From assembly GCA_013265495.1 (NCBI GenBank), contig MU060071.1, forward strand, positions 1 through 64,000: a DNA stretch of 64,000 nt, written 5' to 3'. Source of the stretch: Vicugna vicugna (taxonomy: Eukaryota). Both the position numbers and the translations under genes were made by a program. This document shows positions 14,433-16,541 of the stretch, in pieces. Every line of letters starts with the position of its first letter. Positions within the stretch are counted from its first letter, which is position 1. Under the pieces are notes generated by a model. The model was not told the DNA's origin. It made no database searches and saw only the letters and a program-made list of their open reading frames with translations.

Positions 14433-16541
14433 ATGGACTCTGGGGTCTTAGCGTCTGGGGGGCAGGACCTGACAGAGGCGGAGGCAGAGCAGGAGTTGCG
14501 GTGGTTGGCGCTGGGCTCCGAGGAGGCTCTGGGAGCTGAGACAGAGGGGCCCAGAGCCCCGCAGGCCTGGGGGCGCCTGCTGAGGGCGGTGTGGAAGGGT
14601 CACGTGAGCCTAGTGACTCAGCTGCTGCGGCAAGGGGCCAGTGTGGAGGAGAGGTGAGCTCCAGGGCAGGACCGGGTATCCTCACGGAGGTGGGGGTGGT
14701 GGCTGCTGTCCCTTCACTGGGTGGGAGACGGGAGCAGCAGTCCCTTGGAGGGTGGAAAGGGTCCTCTAGTGGGCAAAGGTATGAGGTCTCTTCAGTGGGC
14801 AGGGGCCCAGTGTCCGTCCCCTCCCTCACCCATGCCGCCCTGCCCAATCCCTGCAGGGACCGTGCGGGCAGGACCCCGCTCCACCTGGCTGTCCTGCGTG
14901 GCCATGTGCCGCTGGTGCGTCTCCTGCTGCAGCGCGGGGCCCCGGCGGGAGCCTTAGACCACGCGGGGCGCACGCCACTGCACGAGGCCGCCTGGCACGG
15001 GCACTCGCAGGTGGCCGAGCTGCTGCTGCGGCGCGGGGCGCCGACGGCCGCGCGCTGCGGGGCCGGCCTCACGCCGCTGCACTGGGCCGCCGCGCTGGGC
15101 CGCACGCTACTGGCCGGGCGCCTGCTGGGCGCACCGGGCCCTGGCTCTGCGGCGGTGGACGCGCGCGGCTGGACGGCTACGCACTGGGCAGCCGCGGGCG
15201 GCCAGCTGCCAGTGCTCGAGCTGCTGGCGGCAGGCGGCCACAAGGGCCTGGAGGGCACCCTGCTCGTGGCGACCGCGGCTGGGCGCGCGGGGGCGCTGCG
15301 CCTCCTCCTGGCTTGTGGGGCGCGGGTGGACGCCCGGGACGGCTCAGGATCCACCGCGCTCAGCGTCGCGGCCAGCCTGGGACTGGCCGCACAGGGCCCT
15401 GGCTCTGCGGCGGTGGACGCGCGCGGCTGGACGGCTACGCACTGGGCAGCCGCGGGCGGCCAGCTGCCAGTGCTCGAGCTGCTGGCGGCAGGCGGCCACA
15501 AGGGCCTGGAGGGCACCCTGCTCGTGGCGACCGCGGCTGGGCGCGCGGGGGCGCTGCGCCTCCTCCTGGCTTGTGGGGCGCGGGTGGACGCCCGGGACGG
15601 CTCAGGATCCACCGCGCTCAGCGTCGCGGCCAGCCTGGGCTGCCAGCAGGTACGTCCCAGCCGGGTCCCCAAGTGACTTAGCAGGTGGCGGGGTGGGTCT
15701 GGCACCAGGGGCCCGAGTGCCACCCTAACTGCTCTGCCTTGTATCCGGCTCGTAGAAACCCAGGGAGGACGCCTGGCCCACAGCAACAAGNNNNNNNNNN
15801 NNNNNNNNNNNNNNNNNNNNNNNNNNNNNNNNNNNNNNNNNNNNNNNNNNNNNNNNNNNNNNNNNNNNNNNNNNNNNNNNNNNNNNNNNNNNNNNNNNNN
15901 NNNNNNNNNNNNNNNNNNNNNNNNNNNNNNNNCCCAGGCAGCAAGAATGGGCGGTAGGTGGCTCAGGACAAGCGGAAGCCTCCAGGTAGAGTCCCTCCAG
16001 CTGCCCCAGGTGGCAAGGGGCCAGTTCCTTCAATTACCAAATGGGGAAGCAGCGTCTGTGAGGGGGCAAAGGCCAAACTCATCTAGGGCAGATGTGCTGT
16101 GTGGCCCATCTGGGCTAGGGCCAGTCCCCACCCTCTCCTGCCCTCCTTTTCCAGGACATGGAGGTGCTGCTTGACCATGGGGCGGACCCAAGCCTCAAGG
16201 ACAGGCACGGCCGCTCTGCCCTCCACAGGGCTGCTGCAGGTGGACATCTGCCCGCTGTCCAGCTGCTGGCAGCTTGGGGAGCAGAGGTGGACGCTCGGGA
16301 CTCGTTGGGCCTTACACCCCTGCACCACGCTGCTCGGGGAGGCCACATGGAGATAGTCACTCACCTCCTGGACAGGGGCGCGGAGGTCGACGCCGCTGGT
16401 TGGCTCCGCAAGACCCCCCTGCATTTTGCCATGGAGTGTGGCCACGGCCCCATTGCCGCGCTTTTGCTGAGCCGAGGGGCCAGCTCCACCCTGAGGACGG
16501 GGTGGGGTGAGGTGGCCCAGGACCTGGGGCCTGCCCTCTGA
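14433..16541 (+). CDS. ANKRD65: Ankyrin repeat domain-containing protein 65. CDS exons 14433-14653, 14857-15649, 16155-16541; 466 aa as assembled, 380 aa without the internal duplication
   Basis: MDSG...[15 protein letters not shown]...[11 protein letters not shown]|[16 protein letters not shown]..., multiple TPLH ankyrin motifs, |[24 protein letters not shown]...GPAL*. Junctions are GT-AG and phase-consistent. Confidence 0.93.
15136..15639 (+). repeat. Perfect tandem duplication: 246-bp unit x2 with a 12-bp linker (period 258 bp, in frame)
   Basis: 15136-15381 is identical to 15394-15639 by base-by-base reading; linker actggccgcaca at 15382-15393. Confidence 0.97.
15791..15932. other. Assembly gap (142 N) in the last ANKRD65 intron
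   Basis: Run of N. Confidence 0.99.

Follow-up and report, generated by a model that had tools for sequence, protein, structure and literature searches.

The ankyrin-encoding exon of an ANKRD65 gene, located in the 64-kb stretch of DNA analysed here (the window), carries an extra 258 bp that is probably a false duplication, left under-collapsed during genome assembly, so that the animal itself would possess this exon in a single copy. The repeat is exact and in frame. Its join, its counterparts in other genomes and the protein that it would encode are described below, followed by a weighing of the possible origins of the extra unit.

Anatomy of the repeat

In pairwise comparison, 15136-15381 and 15394-15639 agree at every one of their 246 positions, and the two segments start 258 bp apart. 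Tandem Repeats Finder delimited the corresponding array at 15125-15639 (period 258, 2.0 copies, 99% matches, no indels, score 1016), and the in-register likeness of the copies extends back to 15125 and 15383, respectively, with two mismatches. The copies are arranged head to tail on the same scaffold, 12 bp apart, and both fall within a single coding exon:

15136..15381, + strand: copy 1 of the 246-bp unit (GPGSAAV...SVAASLG), from pairwise comparison and Tandem Repeats Finder
15382..15393, + strand: 12-bp linker ACTGGCCGCACA, which completes a Gly codon and encodes LAAQ
15394..15639, + strand: copy 2 of the 246-bp unit, after which the exon ends normally with CTGCCAGCAG, next to the donor site

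As 258 equals 3 x 86, the reading frame is open through both units and 86 codons are gained. A preliminary description of this DNA had claimed a perfect 258-bp tandem duplication, made of two 246-bp copies and a 12-bp spacer, that adds 86 amino acids in frame inside one ANKRD65 exon; the figures given above bear it out on both counts. The presence in the sequence of a 246-bp tandem repeat, far beyond chance, is confirmed. Chance similarity among ankyrin repeats was also considered as its source, and is ruled out by the exact identity of both copies. The duplicated unit has a G+C content of 79% and contains 33 CpG dinucleotides. A scan of the 64-kb window detected no other direct repeats of at least 40 bp within 3 kb, and no other tandem arrays scoring at least 100.

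The ANKRD65 gene in the window

Closest relatives, domain architecture and exon boundaries all agree in assigning the gene, by sequence, to ANKRD65 as an orthologue. In a protein search covering 5.8 billion clusters the top matches were all ANKRD65 proteins, originating from many mammals, and the best match was ANKRD65 of Camelus bactrianus, with 93% identity across one unit's worth of query. The cluster of this match includes three Vicugna pacos (alpaca) RefSeq isoforms from a 67.5-Mb record, XP_072831752, XP_072831753 and XP_072831754 (P0122, P0125 and P0123, respectively), whose XP_0728 accessions, like the NC_1329 accessions, are of the VicPac4 generation. Apart from the extra unit, these isoforms and the window show 100% identity over the first coding exon, exon A and exon B, which identifies the DNA as that of alpaca or a very near relative; together with the top cluster matches, the isoforms support the earlier naming of the gene. 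The exons are as follows:

14225..14278, + strand: first coding exon (MEKTPSWRTEALGGLSSE), donor GT at 14279; exact N-terminus match to alpaca RefSeq isoforms P0122, P0123 and P0125
14433..14653, + strand: exon A, encoding MDSGV...GASVEE and carrying two further bases that belong to an Arg codon, donor GTGAGC; the alpaca RefSeq isoforms match it at 100% identity
14857..15649, + strand: ankyrin exon B, 793 bp long (535 bp once the extra unit is subtracted), acceptor CAG, donor GTACGT
16155..16541, + strand: exon C (DMEVLL...GPAL, stop), the canonical last exon, intact, which completes the ankyrin repeat begun in exon B

The A/B and B/C exon junctions agree in position with those deduced from the proteins of alpaca, whale, bat and otter, and they use canonical GT/AG sites. 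The translation of exon B matches the Pfam families Ank_2 (E=6.9e-37) and Ank (E=3.3e-32), and Ank_2, Ank, Ank_4, Ank_3 and Ank_5 all exceed their cut-offs in exons B and C. No function has been established for ANKRD65, which the literature mentions mostly in association or expression lists.

The 3' ends of the camelid ANKRD65 gene models also deserve mention. The alpaca RefSeq isoforms X2-X4 (n=3) and the camel RefSeq isoforms that were retrieved (n=5) join exon B to alternative exons further downstream and leave out the canonical C-terminal ankyrin exon (16155-16541), though it is intact in the window. The window contains exact coding sequence for the tails of alpaca X2 and X3, at 18246-18293 and 18461-18532, and a match to the start of the camel isoform tail at 16946-16975; a search of the protein database did not recover alpaca isoform X1. 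In Camelus ferus genomic DNA (record L001), the last ANKRD65 exon (2621-3004) is 97% identical to window positions 16155-16541 and contains an in-frame stop codon at about 2939-2941, 21 codons ahead of the normal end, reading LLLS-stop-GASS where the window reads LLLSRGASS (Arg). The camel RefSeq isoforms skip that exon.

Origin of the linker at the join

The 12 bp at the join had been described earlier as a collapsed copy of the flank just upstream of copy 1, and closer comparison leads to the same reading. The flank in question is:

15109..15135, + strand: upstream flank and template of the linker, consisting of ACTGGCCG (15109-15116), 15 bp missing from the linker (15117-15131) and CACC (15132-15135)

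Read in register, the linker (15382-15393) matches 15124-15135 at 9 of 12 positions. Its first eight bases, ACTGGCCG, repeat 15109-15116 without a change, a segment that starts 27 bp upstream of copy 1, and this 8-mer occurs only three times in the 64-kb window; its last four bases, CACA, correspond to 15132-15135 (CACC) with one change, C to A. The omitted segment, 15117-15131, is associated with two near-identical 7-mers, CTGGCCG (15110-15116) and CTGGGCG (15125-15131), which agree at six of seven positions and lie 15 bp apart. All three departures from the 258-bp periodicity sit in these 12 bp, and the sequence after the join is perfect. No microhomology was found at the left breakpoint, between 15381 and 15109. 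From these comparisons, the join amounts to a restart of the locus at 15109, combined with a slippage-type deletion of 15 bp (five codons) and one C-to-A change.

Should the linker derive from a second haplotype, one allele of the animal may have an in-frame deletion of 15 bp (GRLLG) within 15117-15135 and, linked to it, a Pro-to-Gln change in the third ankyrin repeat of ANKRD65.

Comparison with orthologues

The segment GPGSAAV...SVAASLG occurs once in each of the three alpaca isoforms. An alignment of 20 rows showed a single copy in 19 of 19 aligned orthologues, the alpaca models, camel and 17 other mammals all being without the duplication. The orthologues inspected came from two camels, donkey, cheetah, red deer, ferret, black rhinoceros, killer whale, right whale, blue whale, bat and otter, and further single-copy orthologues in the same alignment from squirrel, gundi, shrew, guinea pig, tamarin and mouse.

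At the level of genomic DNA, Camelus ferus is also single copy: window positions 14800-15385 align to 1594-2177 of the camel record and window positions 15383-15720 to 1918-2255, and about 260 camel bases (1918-2177) are matched twice by the window. The unit differs from Camelus ferus at 14 of 246 sites, and all 14 differences are carried by both copies, so that the second copy must have been derived from the lamine sequence itself. Taking the distance to camel as a clock (splits at 11-25 Myr), the absence of any difference between the copies would place a real event at less than about 2.3-5.1 Myr (at 95%). By itself, perfect identity separates neither a young event nor an artefact from the other.

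Two points affect how the alpaca gene models are to be read. Interval 15234..15491 (+ strand) is the only one of 258 nt with intron-like ends (GC...AG) whose removal restores the single-copy frame. We do not claim it as an intron, but it is a caveat for reading the RefSeq models, since, given its existence, the RefSeq proteins prove a single-copy message or gene and not strictly a single-copy assembly. In addition, the alpaca models carry less weight if the window comes from another lamine species.

Predicted consequence for the protein

Counting TPLH motifs, exon B encodes ankyrin repeats 1-5 together with the opening 18 residues of repeat 6, which is finished by exon C. The unit extends from the loop that closes repeat 3 as far as residue 15 of repeat 6, and with the linker it amounts to 86 residues, or about 2.6 repeats. 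Both breakpoints are out of register, one lying after residue 15 of one repeat and the other inside helix 2 of another, and the hybrid repeat at the junction has 26 residues, with helix 1 only and no second helix. The insert had previously been put at roughly 2-3 ankyrin repeats; the size agrees with the present figure, but the insert consists of two degenerate repeats and a truncated hybrid repeat rather than of complete ones.

AlphaFold2 was given the exon-B translation with 19 orthologues. The predicted structure has pLDDT values above 90 over most of the first 120 residues. In the hybrid repeat, helix 1 is predicted at 167-173 and is followed by coil up to residue 192, with pLDDT below 50 at 177-183, after which the second block resumes. 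The single-copy, full-length Phyllostomus orthologue (P0002) served as a control: its ankyrin array core reached pLDDT values of 91-98, and its homologous repeat was predicted with both helices (276-283 and 286-294) at pLDDT above 90. According to these models the insert, if real, would interrupt the ankyrin solenoid and not simply extend it.

Searches for the junction and the neighbouring N run

Full-length and fragment searches of the database of 5.8 billion clusters returned no protein bearing the junction, an absence that constitutes weak evidence. A 110-residue query centred on the junction, run against Logan-derived proteins, found no alpaca-type fragment either with or without the junction, and a lamine-specific 35-mer from the end of the unit had 0 matches among metagenome contigs. 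Exact look-up of the exon-C open reading frame and of the duplicated one gave no match; the latter starts with GTG, so an exact match was unlikely anyway. A genuine duplication would be seen in independent reads, individuals or transcripts, and here the alpaca RefSeq isoforms and the protein clusters, themselves weak evidence on this point, were without the junction.

The intron downstream of exon B contains a run of N:

15791..15932, strand not applicable: run of 142 N, either a gap or a deliberate mask

It begins 141 bp past the end of the exon and 151 bp past copy 2, and no gap separates the copies. The corresponding flanks in Camelus ferus are 56 bp apart, against 142 N in the window, as judged from coordinates only. 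The preliminary description had counted this gap in favour of an artefact; such evidence is weak, and we set the run aside as a sign of a poor region, since N may represent a deliberate mask. Runs of similar length occur in the window at 15791-15932, 28931-29062 and 29570-29709 (142, 132 and 140 N, respectively), and could be either sized gaps or deliberate masks.

Possible origins of the extra unit

A false duplication would be produced if one sequence stretch ended at 15381 and a second, overlapping stretch started at the equivalent of 15109: abutted and not merged, the two stretches would print their common 246 bp twice. The 12-bp linker would then be the start of the second stretch, that is, the flank minus the 15 bp between the near-identical 7-mers and with one C-to-A change, a pattern resembling that of a second haplotype (an in-frame slippage indel plus an SNP) or of an error-bearing read end. 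Either a heterozygous 15-bp indel or a poor read end could block recognition of the overlap and so seed the duplication. We infer this assembly mechanism, and the heterozygous indel as its possible trigger, from what is observed directly, namely the repeat, the origin of its linker and the presence of just one unit in all other sources examined. The alpaca drafts that have been published combine Sanger, 454, Illumina and PacBio data and include a meta-assembly of two assemblies (PMC6598621), and in older vertebrate assemblies false duplications, including false exon gains, affect 4-24% of coding genes (PMC9516828). We favour such an artefact because just one unit is present in the alpaca RefSeq isoforms, in camel DNA and in all the other orthologues examined, because there are 0/246 differences between the copies while all departures from periodicity are packed at the join, and because the linker is what would be expected if a second copy of the locus started there. 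The same conclusion is favoured by the position of the junction, which is out of ankyrin register and leaves a hybrid repeat without helix 2 and with pLDDT below 50, and by the G+C content of the exon (79%), which makes it difficult sequence. However, several observations speak against an artefact. The unit is in frame, for which an artefact has a chance of 1 in 3; a perfect 246-bp overlap would normally be merged by most assemblers; no gap lies between the copies, unlike in the typical false duplications of PMC9516828; and the repeat is the sole one of its kind in 64 kb, which gives no hint of a systematic artefact. Real replication-based rearrangements, too, are marked by a templated insert with a nearby point change, and the single-copy RefSeq proteins could have been modelled on a duplicated genome by means of the GC-AG 'intron' at 15234-15491.

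The rival is a genuine and very young germline tandem duplication, which may be private or polymorphic, or may belong to a lamine species that is not the annotated alpaca; we regard it as possible though on the unlikely side. A single replication-based event with two template switches could have produced it: synthesis jumped from 15381 to 15109, where 8 nt were copied and 15 nt were skipped on the CTGGCCG/CTGGGCG microhomology before copying continued with one misincorporation. The encoded ANKRD65 protein would gain two degenerate ankyrin repeats as well as a hybrid repeat that is broken. Templated filler, a microhomology skip and an adjacent point change have been described for error-prone replicative repair, and the linker, templated from 27 bp upstream, with its microhomology-flanked 15-bp skip and one nearby substitution, fits this description. 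The copies also stand head to tail, and the frame is preserved. All 14 lamine-specific changes are present in both copies, so the event followed the camel/llama split, as a young event requires, and zero divergence permits an age of up to about 2.3-5.1 Myr at 95%. The repeat is isolated in the window and not one of many. Constraint on the gene may be weak, given that the C-terminal ankyrin exon is often left out of the alpaca and camel gene models and that ANKRD65 evolves fast (93% amino-acid identity between the alpaca-type and camel sequences in exon B). On the other hand, the duplication is in neither the alpaca RefSeq isoforms nor camel DNA nor any other orthologue, no junction protein was retrieved from the 5.8 billion clusters by full-length or fragment searches, and the junction breaks the ankyrin register in a segment predicted to be disordered. 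Specified in full, as an in-frame internal tandem duplication of 258 bp in the germline of a South American camelid, less than a few Myr old, formed by a two-step template switch, segregating or fixed outside the annotated alpaca lineage and leaving a broken repeat in the middle of the ANKRD65 array, this account is possible but rather unlikely.

Ankyrin arrays change their repeat number in evolution, and an in-register unequal crossing-over between repeats could have yielded an expansion fixed in camelids or lamines; here we consider this extremely improbable. The 6-bp CTGGGC, common to the third and sixth repeats at equivalent positions, could seed an in-register exchange, but one of 282 bp, whereas the observed unit of 86 codons (about 2.6 repeats) is not a whole number of repeats and creates a hybrid repeat of 26 residues without helix 2. 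Zero divergence between the copies also argues against a fixed expansion, which is contradicted by the single-copy camel DNA and alpaca RefSeq models; an ancient or fixed camelid expansion was dismissed on those grounds. As to the two causes named in the preliminary description, template switching and an assembly artefact, the single-copy alpaca isoforms, camel DNA and orthologues favour an artefact or a non-fixed variant, with a real private duplication persisting as the rival.

Significance and relation to known systems

If the extra unit is an artefact, gene models derived from this assembly would give ANKRD65 a spurious insert of 86 residues, and the linker may preserve a real 15-bp in-frame indel allele. 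The case then illustrates that a false duplication can mimic clean in-frame biology, although as an artefact it would be of an ordinary kind. If the unit is real, it would offer a well-preserved case of exonic duplication by template switching, very young and in the germline, and a natural test of the tolerance of an ankyrin solenoid to an out-of-register insert; even so, it would be a private in-frame duplication. Since ANKRD65 has no established function, the biological weight is modest either way.

Unequal crossing-over in ankyrin arrays lengthens the solenoid by duplicating neighbouring repeats, a feature that the extra unit would share. The present case differs from it in having out-of-register breakpoints, a unit whose length does not correspond to whole repeats of about 33 residues, and a defective hybrid repeat. 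Junctions of the FoSTeS/MMBIR type arise by replication slippage or template switching, the textbook exonic example being FLT3-ITD. In-frame internal tandem duplications of this type share with the present repeat the head-to-tail arrangement within one exon, the short templated filler and the adjacent point change; however, they are documented in reads or PCR products, whereas here the duplication is seen in one assembly and independent gene models of the species are without it. Parallels also exist with the false duplications of the 'false exon gain' type (Ko et al. 2022, PMC9516828), which likewise consist of identical or nearly identical intragenic copies on one scaffold and occur in DNA that is hard to sequence; absence from another annotated assembly of the species would be a further common trait, as the single-copy alpaca RefSeq proteins suggest. 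Differently from these, the present duplication measures only 258 bp, covers part of one exon rather than whole exons and has no gap between its copies; moreover, that class is defined by read depth and k-mer evidence, and the repeat described here is known from the assembled sequence. The 'heterotype' class distinguished in the same study (PMC9516828) would be the counterpart of the heterozygous trigger that may have given rise to the extra unit in ANKRD65.
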